Position numbers and translations under genes: made by a program. Below, piece by piece: positions 3,675 to 61,460 of a stretch of DNA of 64,000 bases; position 1 is the first letter of the stretch; each line of letters starts with the position of its first letter. A model generated the notes under the pieces. It had not been told where the DNA came from. It did no database searches and saw only the letters and a program-made list of their open reading frames with translations. Source of the stretch: Dicyema japonicum (Eukaryota > Animalia > Dicyemida); the NCBI GenBank assembly GCA_011109175.1, contig RDEW01000002.1, positions 686,676 through 750,675 on the forward strand. The letters run 5' to 3'.

Positions 3675-4520
3675 TTTTATTTTAATTACCCCGGGAACAC
3701 CGAGAAAGAAAGACAATTGAGGCAAACAGTTATGTGATCCCAGTCCCCGCAATCAATTGTGCTATTCGACGTCTGTGATCTTACATTGTCCCCACTACTT
3801 TCCGGAAGCCTTCTCTCGGTCTTGGAGAGGAATCCGATCGGGAAATCTCTTATCCAATCGGTTTTCTCTTTCCATGGTAATGATCAGGCGAAGCGGGTTT
3901 CCATCTTCCCCACAGACGCGAAGAAATTCGGAACCACGACTACGGGTATTAGCTTCAATGAGTAATGGGTCGACTATTGATCCATTACGTGGGCAAAGCA
4001 TACTGATGGTTTTCTGGTGTATTGAGTTGACTCTGTGGACCATAGTCTCCGATAGCGCGAATCTTCATGCAACAGAGGCATACTCAACGGCTGGCGCGAT
4101 TGTTTGTTGGTAGATGGTAGAAACAGAAGAGTCCATATTCCTCGGGGTCCTCCGGATAAAGGCGCTTAAAACGTTAATTTTCTGAAGGCCTCTGGTAATC
4201 ATGTCTTTTGCGTTGGAGTTAAAATTGAGTTGACTGTTGTAGTTGACTCCAAGGACATTGAAGGACCTTGTCACTGGAATCCGAGTATGAACAATAAAGA
4301 TACTCGGTTCATTCTTAGAACCACGGTCCGAAGTGAAAATGGTACAAATAGACTTGGTTGCAGAAATCGTAAGTCGATTCCCAATAATCCAATCGTAGAG
4401 AATGTTCAATTTTGCCTGAGTTTTAAAGGATGCGACTTGCGTCGAACGGTTCCGTATTGCAATGACTACATCGTCTGCGTAAGATAATGACAGAGAATCT
4501 TCNAATGTCAATTTACTTCC
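3675..4520 (-). mobile_element. 5'-truncated LINE (RT C-terminus plus 3' tail)
   Basis: ORF 4065-4523 LSYADDVVIA..FNVLGVNY..EYASVA; 3' tail CTCGGTGTTCCCGGGGTAATTAAAA; clearly homologous to 41000-41520. Confidence 0.85.
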
Positions 4521-4529
4521 CACTGTTGG

Positions 4530-5799: not shown

Positions 5800-8316
5800 T
5801 TGGACTAAATGAATTTACTTTCCAACAAGATTTGGTTCCTTGTCATCGATCAGTGTTGACAACTACGTTTTTTTTAATAACATCCCATTTCTTGACAGAC
5901 CGCCGCAATCTCCAAACATTCTCTTCCCCATACAGACTCTTCGTATGCCTGGATGGTATACCTCAACTGGAATCTCGAGATGTTGTTTGTTCCCCTGTAT
6001 TCTATTGCTTTCTGGAGATATTGAACAAAACCCTGGACCAAAACCCCTTATTATCATGCACCGCATTGCTAACGGTATAAAAACAAAGATTCTATCATCA
6101 AAGCACAAGATTGACATTTGCCATATACAGGAGTTAAATTTTCTACAAAGAGTACAACCCCACTATTTCCTGGATACATCTCTATCAGAATAAACCGTAT
6201 TGGACGTGGTGGCGACTTACTTATCATTATTAAAAAAGGTTTATCCTTCCACGATGTAAGCGCAAGTGGATGATTTAATTCTACACGACAGGACCGCGGA
6301 ACAAATTTATGTTATCTTAATGGGTCAGAACATCTAATTCTAATTAACATTTACATTCCACTGCCAGGATCTAGTCCTAATAACTATGTTCCGAAGATGG
6401 ATCGTCTCTTACGATTTTCATAGTGATCATATTCCGATTATACTAAAACTGAGCCGATTCAATAACTCATGTAGAATTTAAGCAAACTTCAGATCTACAA
6501 AAAACACTGACTGGTCAAATTTCAAGCTCTTAATTAACCTAATACATTTTGATCCCAGCTCATTTTGCTCCATCGACAAAGCAGTGGACCATCTAAACCA
6601 TGTAATCCTTCGAGCTGAAAAGTTGTTTGCCCTACGTGCAGTTTACAAATCCTACAAGACTACTCTGGACTCGGAAACTCGTCTCCTCATCAGCAATGAA
6701 ACTCCCTGAAGATGAATCATCAACAAACCTCTTCTGATTTGGAAAATATATAATGTTTAAATCAGAAAAAAACAAAACTCATCAGATAAAAGAAAGATAG
6801 GGCGTAGAACCGCCTATTACCATCTATTGGACATAAAATCTACGAGTTTTTTATGGAAAACTATTTGTCGAATCAAGCTAAACTTATCAGGTGTATCAGA
6901 ATTCTTTTCTGCTCCAAATAGTGAAAAAGTTAACAACCTAGTGAATTATTACGCATCTATAAGTCACAAGGACTTTTCGAAAACTCATTCTTGTCACCTT
7001 CGGAATTTAATGCCTAAACCAACTTCGTGGATCGATTTATTTACGCATGCCGATGTCACACATGCTATAAGATCGATGAAGAGATCTTCTACGAGTGTTC
7101 CTGACGATATTACGGGAATTTTTCTAAAACACCTTGGTAATATTTCAATCAATTCGATTACGTCAATTTTTAATTTGTCTTCTAACAAGAACGTCATCCC
7201 ATGCAAATGGAAGAACTCACTTATAATGCCCCTCTTAAAACAAGGAAAACCGAAAACCTTACATTTTTCATACCGTCCAATTTCATTGACGTGCGCATTA
7301 TCGCGCCTAATGGAGAAACTCGTACTCTGGGAAGTTAAACTCCATTTGCTCAACTGCCACTTTCAACATGGTTTCAAATGTGAGCGTTCAACTACGACAC
7401 AGTACAGATAGGCCACGCAAGATCGGAGTCCTATCTTCTATCAAGTGGCGTCTCTCAAGAATCGCCCCCTCTCCGGCGCTATTCAATTTATTCCTAAACG
7501 ATTTACTGGAGGACCAGATTCAATGCTTTTTACATATGCTGACGACTTAATTATTGCTAGTAGAAGCAAATAAGTGGATATGCAAAATCAGAGCTTCAGT
7601 CACAAATTGATGATCTGGGAGCCTGGTTGAATTTGGATCGTCTATCCATATCCAGGGATAAATCAACGTTTACTATCTTCATCACAGACAGAAAAGAAAA
7701 ATATACACTGTATTTGAGCATATATGGAGACTCTACCTCTACAAATACATAAAACTATTCTGGGAGTGACATTCGACCTTTGATGACATTTTATCAACAT
7801 GTGAAGAACGTTTTGACAAAGGGTCTCAGGAAACTGAATATAATGAAATTGTTCTTAAAGTCCAAGCTGTCACGGGAATGCGCTGTCGTTTTGTACAATC
7901 AACTTTTAAAACCGAAGGCTTATGGAGATTCAATATCCAATTTGTACAAGATCAATTCTCTAACTGCCAAATTGGTTCGTCTAACAAATTACCAGTCGAT
8001 CTTTCCCCTCAATGCTTGACCACGCCTCAATCGAAAACAAAGGCTCCGGTATCATCGGTCTGTGTGGTCACGAAACAAGTCGTTTCTTCCATTCAAGACT
8101 AGAAGTCGTAAATACACGTAAATTGGAAAAAAACCCACCCCTCTTCAAATTTTAATGGAAGGTGATCGTCGTCGATACAGGAAAGCCGTGGGTACTCTGG
8201 AGGATCACAAGAAAAACCTCTCGATCCTTTTGAGGTGTACCGGGATCACTTATTTAGTTGGTTTACTCCTTCTTTCTTGGTGTTCCCTTCTCGGGGTTAT
8301 TAAATAAATAAATAAA
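5800..8316 (+). mobile_element. Near full-length decayed single-ORF APE-RT LINE with 2A-like motif
   Basis: LLLSGDIEQNPGP (6002-6040), APE (DICHIQE, GRGG), RT (SYRPISLTCALSRLMEKLV, FQHGF, YADDL); 3' end CTTGGTGTTCCCTTCTCGGGGTTAT(TAAA)n; internal deletions; no ORF1 seen. Confidence 0.85.
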
Positions 8317-8329
8317 GGTTGTAACTGCA

Positions 8330-11300
8330 AAACCGGTTTTTTTTCTATCAACACTGTAATTTCAAAAAATGGTTCCTGAAAATAAACACCGACTCCCTGA
8401 AAAATGTTCCGGTATGGATCGAGGACGAGGAATTACTTGATTACATAAAGGATTTGGCTCCGACAGCGATGAGTGTTTTTTGAATGTTCCGTGATGGTAA
8501 GAAACTCCCTGTGACGAAAGTCACAATTACGTCCAGGGCTGAAGAGACCTCCCTAATCAGGAATGGACTGTTCATTGCTCGAGACCTAATCAACTGTGAA
8601 TGGATGAAGAGGCCCCCTCCTATCTGCTACAATTGTGAACGAATTGGCCATATCGCCGCGCATTGCAAGGAGAAGAAGAGGTGCCTCAAGTGTGGAGGGG
8701 AACACGACCTTGTTGTGTGTGAATTTTCTCCAGACGTGAAGACAAATTGTATTAATTGTGGAGGACCAGGGCATAATGCCCTATACAGAGGATGTCTTGC
8801 TATGAAGGAGGCATCCAAGAAAATGATCCCCATAAAGACAGAGTCAAAAAAAGCAGTCAAGCCAACACAAAAGGTGAAGAGGACCAGTATATCACATATT
8901 CAGGATGGGCCAGTGGAGCGGAGTGCTACACGGGAACTTAAGCAGAGGAAGGCAGAAGTTTCCGTGAGGTATCTCGAAAGTTAAGTGAAATAATCGCACG
9001 TCTAAACAAGCTATGTACACTGCTGATTGTGGATTTACGGAATTTCGTGGACCTGGCTGTGGAGAGCCCAGACCACCATCAAAAATTATGAAAAAGCACT
9101 TAAAAATAGCGCTACTGAATGACCGCTCCTTGGTGAAAAGGCATGATGAACTAGCGCTACTTGCAAAGAATGCCAAGGTTGATGTCTTGGTAGTGAACGA
9201 GACAAAAATTAAACACGGAAGATATTATAGTATGAAAAGATATGATTCGGTGGACATTCAGTGGAAGGATGGAGCAATGGCTGGGAGGGGGACTTTGATC
9301 TTTTTCCTTAAAGAATTGCAAACACGAAACGATTCTATTTTATTGACCGCAGATTCGGAATTCGTGTCCGTCGATGTACAATGTGGAGGGACATGGATAA
9401 GTGTGGGAGGATTATACTCTAAGGACTTGATCCCAGTCTTCTGAGAAAATTGTTGAGTTCTTCGAAAGAAAATGATGAGAAATTAATAGGAGACTTGAAT
9501 GCTAATAATTCGAGTTACGGATGTTGTGAAAACAACGAGGATAGGCTATTCTTAGCAGATCTGGATAACAAAATTGGAGTTGAAGTCTTGACGTCTGAGG
9601 AACCTAACTATTTCTCACACTAGGCGGTGATATGATGGGATTGATTCTAGTGTCTTCACAACTTATAGATCATGTGGACAAACCGAGAATACTTTGGGAT
9701 ATAGGAAGCGATCATATCACACAGGAGGTAATTATAAACCTGGAACCGAATGTTATTGAAGATATTTTCATAAAATATGATACCTCATCGATAGACTGGG
9801 AACATAATCGTGTGCTTTTGTCGAAGACCTTGCGAATGAGAAGTAATTCTTTCTCTTCACCTGAGGAGTTGGACGTTTGTAACTGGGAACTGTCTAATAT
9901 TATGCAGATGTATCTGCGATTGTATGGAAAGAAGGTTTATTCCAAGAGTGCTTCGAACAAGAAGCAGTCTTCCCCTTCCGTGATACGGGATCTTATTCGC
10001 CAGAGGAATAGTTTAAATGCTAAACTTAGACGCTGTATGAATTTGTGGGACAGGAAAACTCTTAAAAGNTAGCGCTACTTGCAAAGAATGCCAAGGTTGA
10101 TGTCTTGGTAGTGAACGAGACAAAAATTAAACACGAAAGATATTATAGTATACAAGGATATGACTCGGTTGACATTTCGTGGAAGCATGGAGCAGTGGTT
10201 GGGACAGGGATTTCGATCTTTTTCCTTAAAGAATTGCAAACACGAAACGATTCTATTTTATTGGCCGCCTATTCGGAATTTGTGTCCGTCGATGTACAAT
10301 GTGGAGGGACATGGATAAGCGTCGGAGGATTATACTCTTAGGACTTGGCCCGATCTTCTGAGAAAATTGTTGAGTTCTTTGAAAAAACCCGATGTCGATT
10401 TTGGTAGGAGACTTGAATGCTAACAATACGAGTTACGGATGTTGTAAAAACAACGGGGATAGGCTACTCCTAACAGATCTGGTTAGCGAAATTGGAGTTG
10501 AAGTCTCGACGTCTGAGGAACCTAACTATTTCTCACACTATGACGGTGATATGCTGGTAATGATTCTTGTGTCTTCACAACTTATAAATCATGTGGACAA
10601 ACCGAGAATACTTTGGGATATAGGAAGCGATCATATCTTACAGGAGGTATTTATAAACCTGGAGTCGAATATTATTGAAGATATTTTCATAAAATATGAT
10701 ACTTCATCGATAGACTGGGAACATTATCGTTGTTATTTGTCGAAGACCTTGCGAATGAGGACTAATTCTTTCTCTACACCTGAGGAGTTGGACGTTTGTA
10801 ACTGGGAACTGTCTAATATTATGCAGATGTATCTGCGATTGTATGGAAAGAAGGTTTATTCCAAGAGTGCTTCGAACAAGAAGCAGTCTTCCCCTTCCGT
10901 GATACGGGATCTTATTCGCCAGAGGAATAGTTTAAATGCTAAACTTAGACGCTGTATGAATTTGTGGGACAGGAAAACTCTTAAAAGCTAAATTTCTGTG
11001 ATTCAAAAATTACTGGAAAGAGCATGGAAAGTCGTTGCGGAGGATAAACTAAAAAATGCAGCCTCAAAAGTTAACTAAAAAACCTTTGTTTCTGGAAAAT
11101 GTACAGAAGGCTTACTAATGGAAATTTAAAGGCAAAGAGTATTGTGCTGGCCGATCATGAGGGAAGGAAAATTCCTTTGGAAAGAGTCCCTTCGGTGTTC
11201 AGGAAGCAGCTTGAGGATATACAGGGAGTTAATCCGCTTAGTATTGTACCTGAAATTTTTCAGAGGAGATATTTAATTTTATGGATTACTCTATGGGCGA

Positions 11301-12990
11301 GCTGAAAAGTCTGGGAAAAGATATCACTTTGGCTGAAGTCAGAACTGCTATACGCGAGTGCAAGAACAAGGCTCCTGTATTTGACAGCATTCCCATCATT
11401 ATGTTTAGAGAAGGGCCCGAAGAACTACTATCTGTTCTACAAAAGATGTATAACTCGAGTTTTAAGCTCGGATATGTTCCTCTGCTATGGAAGCATTCTA
11501 TTGTGAAGATGATCCTCAAACCTGGAAAATCGTGGAAGGATTTTCTTAGTTATAGACCAAGAAGCTTTATATGTTCTACATCAAAGATTATGGAACGGAT
11601 TGTATTCAAGAGATTGAATCGGCATATGGAAGAAAGTAACTTTGTACGACTATACCAATGGGGTTTTTGGCCAGGAAGATCGTGCGGAAATTGTATATTC
11701 TCACTAAATTATGAAAATGGCACGAAGCCTTATTTTGTCAACTTGTACGATCAAAGATGTCTAAAAAAATGTTCCTAGGGTTGAAAGACTATTTGTCTGG
11801 GAGGATATCTTATGTGGTAGCTGATGGAAGATATTCTGATGGTATATCGTTTAAATGAGGAGTACCGCAAAGATCTATTTTAAGACACCCTGTTATTCAA
11901 CGTATTTATGGAAGATTTTCCGTCTCCACTAGACGTCAGGACCAANCCTTATTTTGTCAACTTGTACGATCAAAGATGTCTAAAAAAATGTTCCTAGGGT
12001 TGAAAGACTATTTGTCTGGGAGGATATCTTATGTGGTAGCTGATGGAAGATATTCTGATGGTATATCGTTTAAATGAGGAGTACCGCAGGGATCTATTTT
12101 AAGACCCCTGTTATTCAACGTATTTATGGAAGATTTTCCGTCTCCACTAGACGTCAGGACCAAGCTGATAAAATACGCTGATGACATTTAATCTTGGATT
12201 CGTCTTTGAATACATACCTTTCAGAGCGGAGATTAGGAGTTTTTGTTAACAAAGTCCAGGAATGGTGAGATCGGAGAGCCCTGAGACTCTCCACGGAAAA
12301 GTCCAGTTATTTACAAATAAACAGGCTGGGTTGGCATCACGAAGAGTCTTACACTCTTCGCAAACCGAGAGTTTTTGTTAACAAAGTCCAGGAATGGTGA
12401 GATCGGAGAGCCCTGAGACTCTCCACGGAAAAGTCCAGTTATTTACGAATAAACAGGCTGGGTTGGCATCACGAAGAGTCTTACACTCTTCGCAAACCGA
12501 GAGTTTCGTCCCTGAAATACCTTGGAATTGTATTTGATGGGAGAGGATCATATCTGAAAGACATCGAAGAGCGAAGAAAGAAGGCTGTGCAAGCACTGTT
12601 CTGCACTAGAAGACATAAGTTGGATGGTGAAACCATGTTCTTTGTTTTTCGGAATGTGATTTTTCCAAGACATATTTACGGAAGCGAGGGATGGTTTTAC
12701 AGACCCTCGAGGGAGAGGATCCTCGCTCGACTTGAGAAAACAAGGCGAGCGGCGATCAAACTATATTTTGGAAAAAAATTATATGATGTTTCTACTGAGG
12801 AAGAGAATAATCTTGTGAGGCCGGTCAGGCAAGATGTAGAAATTAGAATCAGTAACTTCCAAGATTAGTAGAAGGGTGTTAGGCAAGGAAACAAAAGGAC
12901 CGGGATGAACAGTCCAGGCCATCTGGCGGACTGAATATCTATTCCGTAGCTTGATGTTAGATTGTTGATAATAATAAACACTGAGTAAAA
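8330..12990 (+). mobile_element. Decayed two-ORF LINE (gag-like ORF1, APE-RT ORF2; I/Jockey-like)
   Basis: ORF1 with three CCHC knuckles (CYNCERIGHIAAHC, CLKCGGEH..C, CINCGGPGH..C); APE (VVNETK, VGDLNA, GSDH); RT (SYRP, GVPQGSIL, KYADD); three internal tandem duplications. Confidence 0.9.
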
Positions 12991-14849: not shown

Positions 14850-16650
14850 ATGTCGACCACTGCAGATAAAATATCGGAAATCCTCCAGAAATTGTCCCAA
14901 CCATATGACAAGATAATTCGACCTCTTGAAGGAACGACTGGTTTCAATATGTACTGCATGAGTCCTCAAAGTCCAAACCACCTTGAAATGAAGCCTATGT
15001 GCTTATTCCTGGGTTCATACTCAGCTGGGAAGACGACAGCCATTGCCTATTTATTACAGGATGACTCTCCTGAACTGAGAACAGGCCCTGAGCCCACAAC
15101 AGACGCATTTCACGTTCTGAAATACGGAGAGAAGAAACTGTCAAGTGATGGAGTGATTCTAATGAATGACCCTTCGTTAGGATTTCAGAACTTTTGTCCT
15201 CAAAATAAGAATTTGAGTCGCCATTTTCGTTTGACTCGGCTTCCTAATCTCGTCTTAAAGGGGATGGACATAATAGACACTCCAGGATTTCTAAGTGGAG
15301 AGAATATGTCAGAGGCTCGAGGTTACAGCCTTCCTAATGTGGTCTATGAGCTAGGAAAGATGGCCACGAGGCTATATTTTTTAATGGACANNNNNNNNNN
15401 NNNNNNNNNNNNNNNNNNNNNNNNNNNNNNNNNNNNNNNNNNNNNNNNNNNNNNNNNNNNNNNNNNNNNNNNNNNNNNNNNNNNNNNNNNNNNNNNNNNN
15501 NNNNNNNNNNNNNNNNNNNNNNNNNNNNNNNNNNNNNNNNNNNNNNNNNNNNNNNNNNNNNNNNNNNNNNNNNNNNNNNNNNNNNNNNNNNNNNNNNNNN
15601 NNNNNNNNNNNNNNNNNNNNNNNNNNNNNNNNNNNNNNNNNNNNNNNNNNNNNNNNNNNNNNNNNNNNNNNNNNNNNNNNNNNNNNNNNNNNNNNNNNNN
15701 NNNNNNNNNNNNNNNNNNNNNNNNNNNNNNNNNNNNNNNNNNNNNNNNNNNNNNNNNNNNNNNNNNNNNNNNNNNNNNNNNNNNNNNNNNNNNNNNNNNN
15801 NNNNNNNNNNNNNNNNNNNNNNNNNNNNNNNNNNNNNNNNNNNNNNNNNNNNNNNNNNNNNNNNNNNNNNNNNNNNNNNNNNNNNNNNNNNNNNNNNNNN
15901 NNNNNNNNNNNNNNNNNNNNNNNNNNNNNNNNNNNNNNNNNNNNNNNNNNNNNNNNNNNNNNNNNNNNNNNNNNNNNNNNNNNNNNNNNNNNNNNNNNNN
16001 NNNNNNNNNNNNNNNNNNNNNNNNNNNNNNNNNNNNNNNNNNNNNNNNNNNNNNNNNNNNNNNNNNNNNNNNNNNNNNNNNNNNNNNNNNNNNNNNNNNN
16101 NNNNNNNNNNNNNNNNNNNNNNNNNNNNNNNNNNNNNNNNNNNNNNNNTGATGTGGAAATAGATCGAATGTAATTTCCTTTAAGCAAATCTAACTTTGAA
16201 ACATTCCAAACTATAATGAAATAACCAAATTATGTAGGCAGCATCCTTTCGTTACCCTAATGACTTCCAAATATAAATACAAACTGCACATAAACCGAAG
16301 TTTTAAAGCTTGAAGAGAAGTTGGTTGAATTGATGAAGGTATTAGATTCTAAAGGTATTTTTTGAAAAAATCAATTTTTTCAAGTGGTTTATGAAGCCCT
16401 AAATTTATCAAGGAGGCATTGTTTGCATTTAATGAAATGAAAATTCTATAGATGCAGAAAATTTTAAACAAAAAGTGAAAAAAAGACCTGTAAGCAAAAA
16501 AGATATTGTAGTTAGATTATCTGCAAGAGACGGAACTCTTACCCAATATTGGAAATGAACAACAAGTATCTCTAATTTCTTCAATAAGAAAGTAAAAGAA
16601 AGTATTTTTATTATAAGCAACATGCGTGAAATCATAATAGTTATAATTTC
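14850..16650 (+). CDS. EHD: EH domain-containing (EHD/RME-1) dynamin-like ATPase; middle lost in N gap; 3' exons uncertain
   Basis: KPMCLFLGSYSAGKTT (P-loop), RTGPEPTTD, IIDTPGFLSGE, ARGY match EHD family motifs; after the gap PNYNEITKLCRQHPF and LTQYWK-like segments are weakly consistent with the EHD C-terminus. Confidence 0.85.
15391..16148. other. Assembly gap (758 N)
   Basis: Run of N; the long ORFs 14850-16151 and 15381-16187 are artefacts of it. Confidence 1.
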
Positions 16651-16922: not shown

Positions 16923-17240
16923 CCGTGGCGCCATGTGGTGGTGCGTGGCTAATTGGTTGAAGTTCTCTGTGTTTGTCTGTTTTGTCCTCTCTCTTCGTAT
17001 TAGGATGGCGTCATGTGATCCATCTGTCAAGGTGGAGCCCAGTGCCTGGCTGGCACAAAAAAGAATCATTTGCTCTCGCCCACTCCAGTGGAGAAGTTTC
17101 CACAACTGCAAGTATAGACGTCTTTTACCCTTTATGTTGATTCCGGATGGACTCTGTTTCTGTAGAAGTGGAAACTGGATATACTTAATTAGTTGTTTAC
17201 TTTAACTTCTTTCTCGGTGTATCCGGGGTTAATAAATTAT
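16923..17240 (+). mobile_element. SINE family A copy 1
   Basis: ~315-nt repeat from CGTGGCGCCATGTGG to CTCGGTGTATCCGGGGTTAATAAA; five clear copies in the window. Confidence 0.85.
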
Positions 17241-17289: not shown

Positions 17290-17665
17290 GCCATTTTCGA
17301 TAATCGAGTGTATATGGTATTATTGAATTTACGGTACTTTTCTCATATGGCGTCATTGGATCCACCTTACTCAACAGACGGCCAATGGATGTCCGACATT
17401 CAAAAGGATATACTCATTCCATCACGAGAGAATTTAGCCCCTGAAGACGAGTTATGGAATCGACCTCAGCTACCTGGCAAACGTATTCCAGATCACTCTG
17501 CTTGGTTGAGGGTTTTGCTGGAACTCGTCAGGATGAAATGAAAAAATTCCAAAGACCACGTTAACACCAAACTAACTAATCAACAGGACCTTTCCACGCT
17601 TCAAAAGAGAAAAAGAATTAGTTAGTTTTGATTTATCCTTGATCTTTGGAATAATTTAAATAATC
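17290..17665 (+). mobile_element. SINE-like family B copy 1
   Basis: Core GGCGTCATTGGATCCACCTTACT and end AATTAGTTAGTTT..GAATAATTTAA; similar to 36500-36820. Confidence 0.7.
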
Positions 17666-17689: not shown

Positions 17690-17935
17690 CCCCCGCTAGT
17701 TTCGGGTTTTCCTTTGACTGTTGGGATCACTTTGTTAGATGTTCCTTCTGATGGCGTCATTGGATCCACCTTACTGAGGAGACGCTCAATGGCTGGCCGG
17801 CTTCAAGGGGATCCAATTATTCTTTCCCCAGGGGACATTGTCGTTACCTGGTGACAAGTTCTGGAACGAGTCAGGATCAAGGAGTTAGTTAGTTTGGTTA
17901 CCTTTAGCATAGTCTTTAGAATAATTTTAATTTAA
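17690..17935 (+). mobile_element. SINE-like family B copy 2
   Basis: Same core at 17753 and same 3' end AGGAGTTAGTTAGTTTGGTT..GAATAATTTTAA. Confidence 0.7.
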
Positions 17936-18025: not shown

Positions 18026-18345
18026 TTATTTATTAACCCCGGATACACCGAGAAAAAAGTTAAAGTAAACAACTAATTAAGTGTATCCAGTTTCCACTTC
18101 TACAGAAACAGAGTCCATCCGGAATCAACATAAAAGATAAGACGTCCATTACATGCAGTTGTGGAAACCCCTCCAGTGGAGTAGGGAAGAGCAAATGATC
18201 TTTTTTCGTGCCGGCCTGGCACTGGGCGTCACCTAGACAGATGGATCACATGACGCCACTCTAGTAGGAAGAGAGAGGAGAAACAGACAAGCAAGCAGAA
18301 AACTTAAACCAATTAACCACGCAGCACCACATGGCGCCACGCGGC
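18026..18345 (-). mobile_element. SINE family A copy 2 (inverted relative to copy 1)
   Basis: Reverse complement aligns along the whole of 16923-17240. Confidence 0.85.
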
Positions 18346-30770: not shown

Positions 30771-31714
30771 ACAATAAATAATATTTTTATTTTAAAATCA
30801 CGTGTAGTTTTAATGGACGTAGATATTTGAAAGACGATGAAATAGTCATAAATTATCATTCTTTGATTCCAGAATTTTTCGAAGTATTCCCTTATTTTTA
30901 TGGATGGGAGTTTATTACTGGTCTTCTAGGACTTTGGATTTTACTAAAATATCTAAGGGATCTGGGGTATTGTGTTTCTGTGTTATGAAGGGGTTTAGAA
31001 TATATCGCTAATGTATGTTTAGGGAGATAAGTGTATGATGATTGATGTTTATGGAGTTACTTGGACCTTGAATTCTAACGAATTTGTGAGGTTTGTGCAG
31101 AATAATCACAGGGAAAGGATCACGTAAATAGTGAATTTAGATGATCACAATTGTATCATGAAGATTTATTATTGCTCAACATGCATTGACTGTTTGGGTA
31201 TTATATGGATGAGATGACATCATGGAGGATTTTTCAATCAAGATAGAATTGGGAGCTTAAGTGAATGGCTGAATTACATTTATTCTTTGCCTGGAACATG
31301 ATAATGACGATTGAGGAAAACTGAATACGGAGGAACAACCTTGATGATTTAGGAGACATGCAGGAGAAACTAATAGAAAAGATACTATAATGTACAAGAG
31401 TAGCTCAAATATGCATACGAAGCGTTTTTAATTAACAAAATGTGTTATACATAACTCCTTGAAAAACTGCATTTTGTTATGGCGGTTCAGCGAAACAAAG
31501 GTTACATCTTTTTTACCACGAGTAGAATGTTTCCATTACTTCCACTCGAGTAGGACTCGCATATTGTTTTAACGATAATGCAGTTATGCGAATTAATCAC
31601 GGGAATGAGTCCAATACATTAATACTGCTCTTTTTTATCTGTTATCTGCTTATCAACAATTACTAGACACCTGTGCACGCTCCGCGTTAAGACATTAAAG
31701 CGAACATTATATGA

Positions 31715-32010
31715 TTGCGTGGCTAATTGGTTGAAGTTTTGTTTGTCTGAACGTCCTCTCTCTTCCTATTAGAGTGGCGTCATGTGATCCGACTGTCAAG
31801 GTGGAGCCCAGTGCCAAGGCGGCACGAAAAAGGATCATTTGCTCTCCCCCACTCTACTGGATGGGTTTCCAAAACTGCAAGTAATGGACGTCTTTTCCTT
31901 TTGTTGATTCCGGAATGACTCTGTTTTTGTAGAAGTGGAAACTAAATACACTTAATTAGTTCTTTACTTTAGCTTCTTTCACGGTGTATCCAAGGTTAAT
32001 TAAATAAATT
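31715..32010 (+). mobile_element. SINE family A copy 3 (5'-truncated)
   Basis: Aligns to 16935-17240. Confidence 0.85.
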
Positions 32011-36499: not shown

Positions 36500-36820
36500 G
36501 ATATTGGCCGCATGTGCCATTGGTTGGCTACCTAATTGAATGATTTCTCTTCCTTCCCTCTGGTAGCGTCATTGAATCCACCTTACTCAGGAGATGCTCA
36601 ATGTCTGGCCTTCATTAAAAAGGATACATCTATCATTCCACCGGAGAGACAATTTCGCTCCCTAGCAACGAGTTCTGGAATCGACTTCAACTCCTCGGAC
36701 AATGCTCTCTTGATCATTGTGCTTGGGTGAGGATTCTGTTGGAACGCATCAGGATAAAGGAATTAGTTAGTTTGGTTTTACCCTTAGTCTTTTGAATAAT
36801 TTAAAATTTAATTTAAGATC
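36500..36820 (+). mobile_element. SINE-like family B copy 3
   Basis: Core AGCGTCATTGAATCCACCTTACTCAGGAGATGCTCAATG and family 3' end; lies just upstream of the GPSM start. Confidence 0.7.
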
Positions 36821-39324: not shown

Positions 39325-39380
39325 CTTCCCTCCGATGGCGTCATCGGATCCACTTTACTGAACAGACGCCCAATGCAATA
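39325..39380 (+). repeat. Family B core only (copy 4)
   Basis: GATGGCGTCATCGGATCCACTTTACTGAACAGACGCCCAATG. Confidence 0.65.
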
Positions 39381-39954
39381 CTACTCCAAAGAAAAGAAAA
39401 TATTGTACATTCTGCGTATAGATGTGAATCACGTATTCTTTTGAAATACTTTTCTATTTGCTTTTTTTAAAAACACTCGCAGCAGAAAGTATGAGGCCAT
39501 GCAAATTGGAAACATCTTCATTAGTGCATAATGAGCTACGAGTAGCACTCTCCTCAATGAAACCGAGATTTCAAAACATTGTGTCAAGAATGATAAAAAT
39601 TATCTCACTAACTTTTTGTGTTAAAAATTGTTTCTGCAGAAAATAATATTTGTATTATATCATGGAGACACAAGATTGTATTTTTTTATAACGGAGGCTT
39701 GCAAAAAAAAAGTTTGGAAACCTCTGATCTAGATGTTGAACTTATTACGATTCTGATTGTTTAAAATTTTTCTCCATTTGTCCCCCTATACTGTCACTCC
39801 TAATAAGTTGGTGGAGGAGGTTTTTGAGTTCAATGAATCTCTTAATCAAATGAGAAGAGTTAGTCCTATACGTGGACTTTGGGGTAGATTGATATCTAGT
39901 TTACAATTTCTTTGGCAACAATTTGGATTTAAATTAACTTAATTATAATAGTGG

Positions 39955-40999: not shown

Positions 41000-41520
41000 T
41001 GCAAATATTTATTATATACATTTGTCCGACATACGACCGATCCTGAAACCTGGCTTGCCAAAGGATTTCCCCAAACAATCGCGCCTGCCGTTGAGTATGC
41101 ATCCGTTGCATGGAGATTTTCGCAATCGGACTCTATGGTCCAAAGAATCAACTCAATACACCAGAAAACAATCAGTATGCTTTGCCCACGTAATGGATCA
41201 ACAGTCGACCCACTACTCATGGAAGCTAAGATCCGTAGTCGTGGCTCCGGATTTCTTCGCGTCTGTGAGGAAGATGGAAATCCGCTTCGCCTGATACTTT
41301 CCACGGCAAGAGAAAACAGATTGGATAAGAAATTCCCCTCCCCGATCGGATTCTTCTGCAAGACCAAGAGAAGGCTCTTCCGGAAAGTAGTGGGGACGAT
41401 GGAGATCACAGACGCCGAATGGCACAATTGATTGCGAGGACTGGGATCACTAACTGTTTGACTCTCTTGTCTTTCTTTCTCGGTTTCCGGGGTTATTAAA
41501 ATAAAATAAATAAATAAAAT
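41000..41520 (+). mobile_element. 5'-truncated LINE 3' end
   Basis: Homologous to 3675-4130; ends CTCGGTTTCCGGGGTTATTAAAATAAAATAAATAAATAAAA. Confidence 0.85.
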
Positions 41521-43646: not shown

Positions 43647-43885
43647 GCTGCCACGTGGCGCCATGTGGTGCTGCTTGGCTAATTGATTGAAGTTTTCTTT
43701 TTGTTTGTCTGTTCCTCCTCTCTCTTTTTATTAAAGTGGCGTCATGTGATCCACCTGTCTAGGTGGCGCCCAGTGCCTGGCTGGTGCTCTCCCCCACTCC
43801 ACTGGAGGGGAAATGGAAACTGGATACACTCAGTTTTTTTACTTTAATTTCTTTCTCGGTGTATCCGGGTCAATAAATAAATTAA
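43647..43885 (+). mobile_element. SINE family A copy 4 (internal deletions)
   Basis: Same head, core and tail as the other copies; lacks ACGAAAAGGATCATT and part of the body. Confidence 0.85.
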
Positions 43886-52997: not shown

Positions 52998-53940
52998 TCA
53001 TGACAAAGCATGTGCAACACGAAAAATTAACAATCTAATTAACGTCGCCCATCTTTTTCGATCCGTTGCCATGTTCCGTAGCACATCTAGATCGTCCCCA
53101 TCTTTAAGGCACTTTTCAATCCTCTTGAGATCTTCATCTAGAATAACCGGCATTGTGTCCTCGGCCGGCCGCGGAAACGAGAAGCTTCTAAAACAAAATA
53201 CTCCTCCATTGCTATGTTGGCAGGGGTCCCCATATTGGCATGTGTCCAAAGAGCCTCCATCTTGAATCAGTAATCTCACATGATATTTGCTTAGTTCCTG
53301 TTCTCTTGGATAAGATTTCGGACGGCATTTTGAAAAAGCTTCGGAAGAAAGGAGTGCTCGGAGATGATTTCTGTGAAAAGAATTCAACTTTTCGAGTTCC
53401 TGCCCTGTACATGCCCATGTACCGGCATTATATAATAGGATTGCCTCTCTAGGCATTGTATAGTCTCATTCGAGTTTTAGGATCAAGCCCTTTGTGCAGA
53501 AGCCAGGTCTTCTTCATTTTGTTGAAAGCAACATTAGTTAGTGTCTTCCTTCGTGTTATATCTTCGGTGTCACCGAGAAGGGATCCTAGTTTTTTTGATC
53601 TACGCCAGTTCTCCTCGGTCCTTTCCTTACTTCTTTTTAGCTCCGTAATTTCAGTTTTGTTTGTGTTTACTTTTAATAACCATTCAGCCATTTTATCTCG
53701 AATTTTCTCCAAAAGTGCAATTAACTCTTTGTTATTCGAAATAAAGTTAACGTCATCCGCATATGCTATTATGTTCGTTCCTTCTCCGATATGAAGCTTC
53801 AAGTCTCGTGGAGCTGCCTCCAGATAAATAATAAGCAAAATCAGGGATAATGGATTTCCTTGAGGGGTACCAATTGTAGTTTCAAATGTCTTCGATAAAG
53901 CTTACCCAGCCCTGACCATCCTAATCGTTGAGCCCTTTGC
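52998..53940 (-). mobile_element. RTE-clade LINE, RT C-terminal half
   Basis: GVPQGNPLSLILLII, AYADDV, KLGSLL, TRMRLYNA, LLYNAGTW, LNSFHRNHLR. Confidence 0.85.
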
Positions 53941-54099
53941 GTTCACTATTCTTTAATAGTGAACACCAAAATATTTAAATAAATGATATTATACATTTTT
54001 AAAAGTAATATTCATTTTATAGTTAATACATCAATGACAATTACTAATTTTTGTTATTGTGAATTGCATTAATATGGCATGTTCACCATAGAGAGAGTT

Positions 54100-54760
54100 G
54101 ACTATATATGCAAGTTTCTTCGTTCCACTGGTAATTTTTCTTTTGATTATTAGCAGAATAGGGTTATGATCACTTCGGGTGTCGTAGATGACGGACTAAT
54201 TAATTGTTGTTGAAAGCTGTGGTGAACAGAGTGTGATATCTGGGAGGTTGAAATGTCAGAGTTCCATTGAGGTGTTCCTGTGTTTGATGGGTCATTGATG
54301 ATTGTCAGATTGCCAGACTTCGACAGCAGCAAATTTCCTCTTGTATCTGCAAACTGATTTAACAGCCAGAGAGAGTATTTGGCATTCAAATCGCCGAATA
54401 TCACAACTTCGTTCCAACTCCCTAGTGCTGATAAGTCCGGCATAGTGTAATGTTTCGGACATGAGCATGGGTATACATGTTTACAAAATATAGTCTTCCG
54501 TTTGTTGTGCCAACAGATATTCCGATTATTTCCATGGTTTCATCACTTCCCAATAGTCTCTTCACTTCGATTGTATGTTCGTTATACTTTAGGTGTTTTC
54601 TGATTAATGCAAGTAGTCCTCCTCCACGTTTCTTAGTGCGATCGTCAGGGACGCACGATGTCAGCTTTTAGTTTAACAATCAGAGTTCTAAGTTCAATAA
54701 TTTTGCCTTTAATTCAGATCACGTTTAGTTGTATAACAGAGATCCGATCTTTTGACTTGT
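54100..54760 (-). mobile_element. LINE APE endonuclease fragment
   Basis: ISVIQLNV, VIFGDLNAKYSLW, broken SDHNPI. Confidence 0.7.
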
Positions 54761-55420: not shown

Positions 55421-55574
55421 ACATTTGTTTAATTGTTAAAAAAAATTTTTGATTTAAAAAATTAAATAATAAATTTTTTAATTAGAATTTTCCTCCCCGG
55501 TGGGCAAAATAAGAAAAGTTTATTTTCAATTCTATCCTTGCAAACCAAGTAATCATTTTTTATCTACCATAGCT

Positions 55575-56817
55575 ATGAATCAGATACTAAATGAACAGGA
55601 CTGCATTATTAAACTCAAAAAATGTTATGTCACCTATGACTTTACAAAAAACACCATGATGACGGAAAAGGAAAATAAAAGACATCTTCTCGAGGAACTC
55701 ATCGATTTTTGCGCTCAAAATAAGTCCTCTCCCATTGGGATTGACTTCATCTCAGCCTCTCTGACTATGATTCAGTCAAACATATTTCGAACTCTTCCAA
55801 AATACGAGTACTTTAACGGAATCGACATTGATCTTCCTGAGACTGCGAACGAACCAATGTGGTATCACCTGGAGGTAGTTTTGTACCTTCTAAAGCAGCT
55901 CGTTTACGAATACTTCCTTAATTTCCTGGATCTTTCCATACCCGAGACAGCCCTTAAAGCCAAGCCCTTCAAATGTCTTGCTAGGAGTGTCGTTTTGATG
56001 TTGGGTTCCAATGATTCGATGGAACGGAGCTACTTGGAGTTCATTCTGCACAAGATCTTCTCGAAGATCATCTCTCTGAGGACTTCCCTGTTTAAATACA
56101 TGTCGAACATGATTCTCTGGTAAAATTTAGTCGAACCAGGTTCCTGTACGACGGAGAAAACTTCAACGGGGTGCCGGAGCTCCTGACAGTCTTCCAGTCC
56201 ATAATTGAGGGGTTTAATGTCCCATTGAAACAGAAAAATGTCGAGTTACTGAAGAATATTATATTGCCGCTTCACAAAAGTAGGTGTTTGTACGCCTTTC
56301 ACGCTCGGGTTAAACTTGGTGTCATTGAAGCTGTCGCTGTGTACCTGTGAGTATGTGAGGAAGGACCCTGGCTTGTTTGAAGTAATTTTGAAGTATTTGA
56401 TAAAGATTTACCCCAGGAGGTGTTCTAGAAAAGGAGTTTGAAGGGGTTTTGGTAATTTAGGTTTTGATTATTGACGAAATTGCCCGCCTATTTCAAATTG
56501 TGAACGTGAGTCTTGTCGGCTTTGATTTGTGTCATAAGTTTGTTGAGTTTTTGGTACCTTTTTATGGGGATCTTTGCCATCAGGTTTTTGTGGAATTATT
56601 TGAGATTGCTGAGATGGTTCTTACTTTTCCACGTCATGAATGGATGCTAAATTTAATTCTTCGGTACCCTGATCTATTTCTTGATTCCTTGCTCCCTGTT
56701 CTTTATGAGTCTGCCCATAATCACTGGTCTCTTACTATTTGTTTGATGAGCTTCGATGTAATGAATTTTCTACATGGAATTTTTCCTGATATTTTCATGA
56801 AAAACCTGGCAAGTTGA
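55575..56817 (+). CDS. PPP2R5: PP2A regulatory subunit B' (B56), 6-exon model, 376 aa
   Basis: Introns 55875-55898, 56120-56139, 56309-56330, 56436-56460, 56584-56604 give an open 1131-nt frame with B56 motifs KLKKC..YDF, NIFRTLP, WYHLELVYEYF, ERSYL..ILHKI, NGVPELL, LPLHK, HQIAE, HWS. Confidence 0.9.
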
Positions 56818-60584: not shown

Positions 60585-61460
60585 TCATCAAGAACGTTAT
60601 GACAAAAAGTCTTAGGAAACTTAATATAATTAAACCTCTTTTTTAAGTCCAGGCCGTCACAGGAATGCGCCCTCGTCGAGTTCAATTAACTCCCAAAACC
60701 GACGATTGAGTATGCTTGTGCCTCATGGGCCTTTTTTTTAATTAACCCCGGGTACACCGAGAAAGAAGTTAAAGTAAACAACTAATTAAGTGCATCCAGT
60801 TTCCACTTCTACAGAAACAGAGTCCATCCGGAATGAGCATAAAAGGTAAGACGTCCATTACATGCAGCTGTGGAAACCCCTCCAGTGGAGTGGGGAAGAG
60901 CAAATGATCCTTTTCGTGCCGGCCTGGCACTGGGCGTCACCTAGACAGGTGGATCACATGACGCCACTCTAATAGGAAGAGAGAGGACAAACAGACAAGC
61001 AAGCAGAAAACTTCAACCATTAACCACGCAGCACACAGCGCCACGCCGCTCGATCTCATGGGCCTATGGAGCTTCGATTTCAAATTCAATTAAGATCAAT
61101 TCCCTAATTGGCAAACTAGCACGTCCAACGAATCTACCCCCGATTTTTTCTCTCCAATGCTTGACCACGCCGCAATCAAAAATAATGGCTCCGGCTTCAT
61201 CGATCTGTGTGGCCAAGAAACAAGTCGTTTTTCCATTCAAGGCTAGTGGCTTCAAATACACGAAATTTGGGAAAAAAACCCACCCCTCTTCAAACTCTAA
61301 TGAAAGATGATCGTCGTCTATTCAGGAAAGCCGTGGGTACTCTGGAGGAACACAGGAAAAACCTCTCGATCCTGTTGAGGCGTACCGGAATCACTTAATT
61401 AGTTGGTTTACTCCTTTTTTCTTGGTGTTCCCTTTTCGGGGTTATTAAATAAATAAAATA
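60585..61460 (+). mobile_element. LINE 3' portion (family of 5800-8316) interrupted by a SINE
   Basis: 60585-60732 matches ~7800-7900; 61055-61460 matches ~7920-8316 including the tail. Confidence 0.85.
60733..61054 (-). mobile_element. SINE family A copy 5, full length with 11-bp TSD
   Basis: CTCATGGGCCT at 60722-60732 and 61055-61065; A-rich tail. Confidence 0.9.

Follow-up and report, generated by a model that had tools for sequence, protein, structure and literature searches.

What kind of RNA is encoded by a 61-nucleotide (nt) segment that lies inside a repeated element of Dicyema japonicum and whose helices follow the strand order of hepatitis delta virus (HDV) type ribozymes? The segment lies in a 64,000-nt stretch of contig RDEW01000002.1 (assembly GCA_011109175.1), referred to here as the window, within the fifth copy of a short interspersed nuclear element (SINE) family that we call family A. 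The initial annotation offered two options, an active variant ribozyme or a ribozyme-derived structural domain, and the second proved the better one: the segment, or module, is homologous to the 5′ ends of long interspersed nuclear elements (LINEs) both in the window (54925–54838) and in Octopus sinensis (O1–O3). Taken as a whole, we lean towards reading it as a LINE-5′-derived fold of HDV topology whose helices are kept in the SINE, which would not be an efficient self-cleaver and whose shape would be used by the machinery of the partner LINE. Related modules are labelled B (a sister SINE family) and D (a variant) in the window, and O1 to O4 in the octopus.

The minus strand at 60965..60905 is identical to the 61-nt string first quoted, at the same location, and its paired regions (P1 to P4) are as drawn there, with joining segments (J) and loops (L) between them:

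60966..60971, minus strand: leader TAGAGT, directly 5′ of P1; the LINE versions keep TAGCG(T/C) at alignment columns 1–5, and the octopus O2 copies inherit the leader
60960..60965, minus strand: 5′ strand of P1, GGCGTC, partner 60938–60933; both-sided changes at 6/6 pairs across variants, 93.8% of cells paired
60951..60956, minus strand: 5′ strand of P2, TGATCC, partner 60910–60905
60940..60949, minus strand: P3 (CCT/AGG, extended (A)CCT/AGG(T)) with the 4-nt L3, GTCT
60933..60938, minus strand: 3′ strand of P1, GACGCC
60916..60930, minus strand: P4 hairpin, G-TGCC / AGGCC / GGCA-C, with closing pair G60930–C60916; C60916 is the base initially called the catalytic C
60911..60915, minus strand: J4/2, GAAAA; the run N-AAAAA is kept in nearly all variants
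60905..60910, minus strand: 3′ strand of P2, GGATCA
60875..60904, minus strand: ~30 nt after the module, CATTTGCTC..CCCC.., over which homology to the LINE 5′ region persists

The strand order P1-P2-P3-P3′-P1′-P4-P4′-P2′ is present, and the module has the top score with a descriptor of HDV order (P1 6, P2 6, P3 3 and P4 4 bp; G-U allowed). This descriptor gave 26 matches in the 128 kb of both strands, and 9% of dinucleotide-shuffled SINE sequences matched it as well, so little weight attaches to strand order alone. The strength of the helices is a different matter and is not due to chance, since the pair-strength score of copy 5 (51) was reached by none of 3000 shuffles (maximum 45) and the top three descriptor matches in the window were all copies of the module. 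The minimum free energy structure of the isolated 61 nt held the P1 and P4 hairpins only (z = −2.2).

To evaluate covariation, a covariance model with P1, P3 and P4 was used to guide an alignment of 22 rows, of which 20 are distinct. With P2 added as a pseudoknot, 87–88% of the cells in the full structure were paired, compared to 75–76% in shuffles (0/500), and both-sided changes were seen at 15–17 of 19–21 pairs. Sliding the 3′ partner by 1–3 columns, as a control, left 36–46% paired. P2 is absent from the covariance model, so its pairing is not a product of the alignment fitting; 84.6% of its cells were paired vs 76.6% in shuffles (0/500), with 28–53% in slid versions, and clean switches were observed at columns 18–117 (A-U 9, G-C 6) and 20–115 (C-G 11, U-A 4). 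Count-based covariation measures for P2 alone were not above shuffles. The P4 stem differs by family (TGCC/GGCA, ATGC/GCAT, ATACAAT/ATTGTAT, GATAC/GTATC, TGCTGA/TCAGCA), and L3 is 4–7 nt long in most variants, with an insert of 15–27 nt in D and O4. Because G-U pairs are frequent, the fold was assigned to the sense RNA strand. The HDV/CPEB3 helix order seen at the outset is thus kept through covariation in all four helices and, judged from the alignment, the nested double pseudoknot, P2 included, is real and maintained by compensatory changes across 20 variants.

Relatives within the window were found with a profile and a covariance model, the latter built on P1, P3 and P4:

54838..54925, minus strand: module variant D, at the 5′ end of a decayed LINE (covariance-model match, E 3e-4)
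53449..54443, minus strand: apurinic/apyrimidinic endonuclease (APE) and reverse transcriptase (RT) remnants of the variant-D LINE (APE 54443–54150, RT 53838–53449)
36560..36633, plus strand: module of the sister SINE family B
17748–17822, 17344–17419 and 39332–39408, plus strand, and 52850–52823, minus strand: further family B modules

Variant D has helices P1 GGAGTC/GGCTCT, P2 TGGTTC/GAGTCA and P4 ATGC/GCAT. The remnants downstream of it on the same strand matched Pfam Exo_endo_phos_2 (E 0.0018) and RVT_1 (E 3.3e-9), and the module therefore heads a LINE within the window. Two further module copies (30711–30636 and 51294–51225) were left out as too decayed. A module-like string at 288–214 on the minus strand, GGAGAG...CTCTCC CAA...GGATCATTGG, lacks P4, and its covariance-model E of 2.7 is at chance level.

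Additional relatives came from Octopus sinensis (assembly GCA_006345805.1), at loci reached by an exhaustive protein search with an unrelated LINE piece of the window. Three LINE 5′ ends there carry the module, namely O1 (locus L122), O2 (L125, L128, L129 and L130) and O3 (L125), together with a SINE-like family, O4, in which the module is internal:

L122 1859–1167, minus strand; L125 10001–11134, plus strand; L125 3140–2900, minus strand: octopus LINE 5′ ends with the start codon inside the fold
L129 16920–16821, minus strand; L128 16891–16992, plus strand; L128 13805–13904, plus strand: O4 copies

An invariant GTCATGTGGTTCACC holds the start codon in O1, O2 and O3. The open reading frame (ORF) begins MWFT(V/F)S... 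and runs across the whole fold, followed by a 2A-like GDVEQNPGP after ~50 codons and then by the APE; the annotated protein P0057 likewise begins at the ATG inside the fold. The four O2 copies are 96–99% identical over 2.9 kb, with similarity beginning 8–14 nt upstream of P1, at AT(G)T(3-5)AGCGC, and a related leader, TAG(C/A)G(T/C), occurs in O1, D, O4 and A too. The L3 of O4 is expanded to an insert of 26–27 nt, its P3 covaries (CCAT/ATGG vs CCAAAT/ATTTGG) and position 6 of its P1 is U-A in place of C-G.

The middle part of the SINE is therefore homologous to the LINE 5′ end both in variant D and in O1–O3. A SINE A profile run against 156 kb of octopus DNA matched only over the module and ~30 nt (O2 LINE, model positions 80–178), so that the window stems from a different species, with the LINE-derived piece alone common to both. 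By this homology, the module in SINE A derives from a LINE 5′ end, and the SINE stretch folds in an HDV-like manner because it was copied from there. Outside these loci, no module was found in L126 or L127 (two JGI contigs with related APE ORFs) or in a scan of viral contigs. A metagenome scan with a 15-base module pattern returned 120 loci, all by chance, and the profile gave one weak match (E 1e-3). A literature search by module sequence gave unrelated primers only.

In family A, the ATG and the 5′ strand of P2 read ATG TGA, where the LINEs have ATG TGG TTC (Met-Trp-Phe). The LINE frame is lost in the SINE-type families (ATG TGA in A; no ATG in B and O4), and their P2 differs from the LINE version by compensated changes. 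The compensated P2 changes in A, B and O4 hint at selection for the shape outside the coding LINE.

Family A therefore combines a head, a LINE 5′ piece, a body and a LINE 3′ tail. It has the properties of a SINE, being short and of very high copy number, with a target-site duplication and a 3′ tail common to a LINE. The following features were delineated:

60732..61054, minus strand: SINE family A copy 5, 323 bp, from the alignment of five copies
61055..61064, minus strand: 5′ copy of the target-site duplication, 10 bp, GGCCCATGAG, read from the sequence
60722..60731, minus strand: 3′ copy of the target-site duplication, 10 bp, GGCCCATGAG, read from the sequence
61005..61054, minus strand: head with A-box-like and B-box-like motifs, conserved among A copies
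60732..60805, minus strand: 3′ tail, common by alignment to other retroposons and a LINE 3′ end
16923..17237, plus strand: copy 1
18028..18345, minus strand: copy 2
31703..32004, plus strand: copy 3
43650..43878, plus strand: copy 4, with internal deletions; the 3′ strands of P4 and P2 are gone

Copy 5 is laid out as head, pyrimidine-rich linker, LINE-5′-derived module, body and LINE-type 3′ tail with a terminal A-run. The empty-site joint 60721->61055 occurs in other copies of the host repeat in public contigs of the same organism, with 11 letters that fit either side. The host is a repeat of ~510 bp, present at 7804–8316 (plus strand) and at 60590–60702 plus 61061–61453 (plus strand), with copy 5 inside the second; the repeat has a 3′ tail as in SINE A and ends in (TAAA)n. 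In the other family A copies the module starts at 17007, 31776 and 43738 on the plus strand and at 18257 on the minus strand, in line with the copies first listed. The details reported for these copies also stood, with a P1 mismatch in copies 1 and 3 (G-A, GGAGCC) and a variable L4 over a P4 stem that is kept except in the deleted copy 4.

About 24,500 contig pieces of one run align to copy 5 at 80% likeness, and the genome copy number of family A is in the tens of thousands. Genome-wide variant frequencies were obtained by placing the contig pieces of one run on copy 5. Four runs were found in all, each made up of contigs of a single study and none recorded as RNA. G was found at 60937 in 47% of copies, turning a U-A pair of P1 into U-G, with C>T at 60916 in 19% and G>A at 60915 in 6%. 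Depth along the SINE was uninformative on head-less copies, given that only contigs were at hand and that the head of copy 5 has private changes.

A tRNA-like A box was initially noted ahead of the fold. A tRNA origin of the head was not confirmed: A-box-like and B-box-like strings are present, ARAGORN found no tRNA gene in the head and Rfam gave no tRNA, 5S or 7SL match at E<=10. Runs of four T occur within the element at 61010–61007 (minus strand; GAAGTTTTCTG), ~45 nt from the 5′ end, and at ~60845–60842 (minus strand; CCTTTTATG), in the body. Transcription of SINE A by RNA polymerase III is uncertain because of these internal runs and of the missing tRNA-like match. We also considered that the head, too, was LINE-derived, from a by-eye likeness to sequence 5′ of the LINE modules (CCTAATTGAAT), and rejected this, as local alignments were no better than those of shuffles. 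At the other end, a LINE 3′ end at 3676–4523 (minus strand) has a SINE A-type tail with an RVT_1 C-terminal remnant upstream. The tail-sharing family has copies at 3676–4523 (minus strand) and 41071–41501 (plus strand).

Does this fold cleave itself? The base that would have to act as general acid appears to be engaged in pairing. C60916 of CGAA pairs with G60930 of CAG, and the corresponding columns (73–107) hold G-C in 12 cases, A-U in 3 (all family B) and other combinations in 3; from these counts, C60916 is the closing pair of P4 and not an invariant unpaired general acid. At the base after this pair, the equivalent of C75, a C is confined to O1 and O3; A, D and O4 have G there, and B and O2 have U. 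The genome-wide variants at both sites, U at C60916 and G at 60937, are likewise compatible with pairing. In family A, P1 is 6 bp long and opens with G-C; G-U comes first in B, D, O1, O3 and O4a, 7 bp are found only in O3, and the first pair (columns 6–70) is GC in 8, GU in 5 and AU in 2. J1/4 reads CA(G) in A, B, D and O1 and CG(G) in O2.

The loop and core pairing were also atypical, as the caveats raised at first had anticipated. An HDV-type L3 of ~7–8 nt with a conserved U...C(C)...G core is absent, L3 being 4 nt (GUCU) in A and 4–6 nt in B, O1 and O2, with O3 alone similar. Between J1/4 and L3 (GUCU, ACUC, UUUC) there is no conserved complement that would form P1.1, and only O3 fits (GG with UUCUCGU); a 4-nt L3 and the missing complement leave P1.1 unsupported in family A. 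None of A, B, D, O1 and O3 matched the Rfam HDV-type models (HDV, CPEB3, drz-agam and related) at E<=10, a negative that weighs little because these models are narrow.

Inheritance bears on the same question. All A and B copies retain heads, ~90 nt of which lie 5′ of the module. This includes all five family B copies in the window; those at 17344, 17748 and 39332 were considered as headless elements, which was ruled out, as their upstream sequence consists of decayed or different heads. Since the cutting base is paired and every copy keeps the part that cleavage would remove, the SINE module probably does not work as a ribozyme and is instead conserved as a shape.

The scheme that we favour starts from the LINE. 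A ~100-nt stretch was acquired by family A from the 5′ end of a LINE, and the 61-nt segment is its core. In LINEs, the double pseudoknot begins a few nt from the element's 5′ end, and since the start codon lies within J1/2 the fold doubles as the first ~20 codons of the ORF (MWFT..., with the 2A peptide and APE in Octopus sinensis). In the SINE, the fold sits ~90 nt behind the head with its helices retained; it would not self-cleave efficiently, and the RNAs copied into tens of thousands of insertions all still had the head. We infer that the SINE keeps the shape because the machinery of the partner LINE uses it. The R2 protein binds structured 5′ RNA, and a candidate role by analogy would be that of a 5′-side protein-binding element or one for ribonucleoprotein assembly; in the LINE, the fold may also aid the start of translation at the AUG inside it. 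A bolder version, which we regard as unlikely, is a non-cleaving 5′ "handshake". Here the LINE protein or the ribosome would recognise the shape around the LINE start codon, SINEs would have to carry the fold besides the 3′ tail for efficient mobilisation, and a cephalopod SINE superfamily would have the fold as its functional core domain, a ribozyme architecture exapted for binding.

Several points weigh against the favoured scheme. The covariance model that shaped the alignment already contained P1, P3 and P4, the independent families in the alignment number only ~9 and one row is a false match; with P2 counts within shuffles, the covariation support is good, not overwhelming. Furthermore, the covariation may have arisen in parent LINEs other than those found here, so that no selection would be needed in the SINE. 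Within family A, variable sites number 3/61 nt in the module vs 20/262 nt elsewhere, and the module is not clearly more conserved. The protein-binding role is an analogy, not a result, and slow or conditional cleavage would be compatible with the inheritance of heads.

Among the alternatives, one concerns ancestry and refines rather than replaces the favoured scheme. The fold could be a true ribozyme in some LINE lineages of the O3/O1 type and non-catalytic in the others and in SINEs, which we hold as a tentative possibility. In its single copy O3 looks much closer to canonical: its 7-bp P1 starts with G-U, its L3 (UUCUCGU) is close to that of HDV, P1′ is directly followed by a GG that could form P1.1, and the C behind P4 is unpaired. 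Immediately 5′ of the predicted first base (G1) of O3, at L125 3190–3164 (minus strand), lies a partial duplicate of its module, GGTTCACCTTCTCGTG; it resembles what a template jump would leave if the RNA 5′ end coincided with the predicted site of cleavage. A 5′ HDV-like ribozyme and an N-terminal 2A are also combined in L1Tc/Ingi elements (PMC3185411, PMC3708506). Yet a single O3 copy does not define the 5′ end, its P3 has only 2 bp and Rfam gave no match, and the young O2 family clearly retains its leader.

It could also be that selection acted on the fold in the parent LINEs alone, where it served as a ribozyme or in translation, and that the SINEs carry recent copies of it without function. 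We consider such a neutral relic doubtful. The genome-wide variant table, in which conservation of the module is no higher than that of the rest of SINE A, fits it, as do the loss of half of the module by deletion in copy 4 and the CpG of CGAA, which decays as a neutral CpG would; the P2 version of family A may, moreover, simply be inherited from its parent LINE. However, all helices are retained, despite differing sequences, in no fewer than four families of SINE type from two species (A and B; O4 in octopus), and with the LINE reading frame gone in those families (ATG TGA or no ATG), compensated change outside the coding LINE is suggested. The main P1 polymorphism, from U-A to U-G, also speaks against a relic.

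An active HDV-like self-cleaving variant in SINE A, with C60916 as general acid and cleavage 5′ of G60965, is very unlikely on the features described above, and the initial proposal to this effect is not sustained. The helix order is correct, P1, P2 and P4 are strong, the C-N-AAAA after P4 resembles C75-G76-A77-A78, and P1 starts with G-U in B, D, O1, O3 and O4a. HDV-like ribozymes also tolerate great sequence variation (PMC3774820), and a P1.1 of a single pair suffices in L1TcRz (PMC3185411). These points are outweighed by a C60916 that is paired with G60930 (A-U in family B) and replaced by U in 19% of copies, by the G at the C75 equivalent, by a P1 that starts with G-C over a 4-nt L3 with no conserved complement in J1/4, and by the inherited SINE heads and LINE leaders 5′ of P1, with none of A, B, D, O1 and O3 matching the narrow Rfam models at E<=10. 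Finally, a DNA-level element such as an internal promoter like Pr77 of L1Tc, with RNA pairing incidental, would suit a module within the first ~80 nt of LINEs and has a precedent in the 77 nt that are both promoter and ribozyme in L1Tc (PMC3383444), but it is highly improbable, as it leaves the compensatory changes in four helices and the one-strand-only G-U pairs unexplained and the module is 90 nt inside the element in SINEs.

The favoured scheme combines two known kinds of observation, HDV-like folds at LINE 5′ ends and SINE bodies made from LINE 5′ parts. For the first kind, the closest system is L1TcRz/Pr77 of the L1Tc/ingi clade, with its derivatives NARTc, RIME and SIDER (PMC3185411, PMC4035085). 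Both systems have an HDV-type fold in the first ~77 nt of a single-ORF LINE, an ORF with a short leader and a 2A peptide just before the APE (known here from architecture), and short non-autonomous elements that carry the same 5′ module. L1Tc, Ingi and Ingi-1_AC of Aplysia lack ORF1 and have a short leader and a 2A immediately before the APE (PMC3708506). L1TcRz differs in that it cleaves at +1, with nothing 5′ of P1 inherited, whereas here a leader of 8–14 nt (LINE) or a head of ~90 nt (SINE) is inherited. The SINE module is also internal rather than terminal, the families have no conserved catalytic C in common, the start codon is inside the fold and there is no detectable sequence similarity between L1Tc and the module.

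The HDV-like ribozymes of R2, RTE and other non-LTR (long terminal repeat) retrotransposons (PMC3774820; Ruminski et al. 2011, as cited in PMC5786205) likewise form a nested double pseudoknot at the LINE 5′ end, the sequences of P4 and P2 being variable. When such a ribozyme cuts at the base of P1, the template loses all upstream sequence (PMC3774820). R2 keeps the catalytic C and four other invariant core positions and removes all upstream template sequence; the module, by contrast, has a C that pairs and covaries, a short L3 and retained upstream sequence. With HDV and CPEB3 themselves, the module shares the helix order P1-P2-P3-P1′-P4-P2′, a C-N-A-A-like string after P4 and a size of 61–68 nt, but family A has no G-U at the base of P1, no P1.1, an L3 of 4 nt rather than 7–8 nt, a base-paired C and no Rfam match.

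For the second kind, SINE bodies from LINE 5′ parts are known from Vingi- and RTE-derived SINE2 families and from the Ceph domain's 3′ half (Kojima 2018, PMC5786205), and LP-SINEs carry a ~70-bp LINE 5′ domain in other molluscs (Matetovici 2016, PMC4758252). Those elements, too, consist of a head, a LINE 5′ fragment and a LINE 3′ tail, with a LINE 5′ domain of ~70–100 nt common to several SINE families and species. Compared by description rather than by sequence, they differ in that their domains are defined by sequence only, while the fragment captured here is an HDV-shaped fold. Both papers argue that SINEs with a head would be expected to shun a 5′ end that carries a ribozyme, since truncation would follow (PMC5786205, PMC4758252). 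The module occurs in several SINE families (A and B; O4 in octopus); a new SINE superfamily in the strong sense is not supported, SINE bodies from LINE 5′ ends having already been described in these two papers.

Elsewhere in the window, a decayed LINE at 8484–12000 (plus strand) has a zf-CCHC ORF1 and pieces of endonuclease and RT with no module upstream; its closest relatives (31–37% identity) are in Octopus sinensis. An ORF at 55500–56123 (plus strand) encodes a PP2A regulatory subunit B56 domain (Pfam E 5e-26), and the variant-D LINE adjoins it on the opposite strand. A Dynamin_N-like ORF at 14850–16151 (plus strand) enters an assembly gap of 758 N (15391–16148), and its apparent length of 433 amino acids is an artefact of the Ns in that gap.

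Conserved central domains have long been a puzzle in SINE superfamilies, and one of them here has a defined origin and a defined RNA fold. The module suggests that a ribozyme architecture may persist after losing catalysis, or without needing it, and that what SINEs copy from their LINE may include, besides the 3′ tail, a 5′ structural signal. A start codon in an HDV-like fold, together with 2A, links three devices of Ingi-type elements (a 5′ ribozyme, a cap-independent start and 2A) in molluscs. All of these points are testable with short synthetic RNAs.

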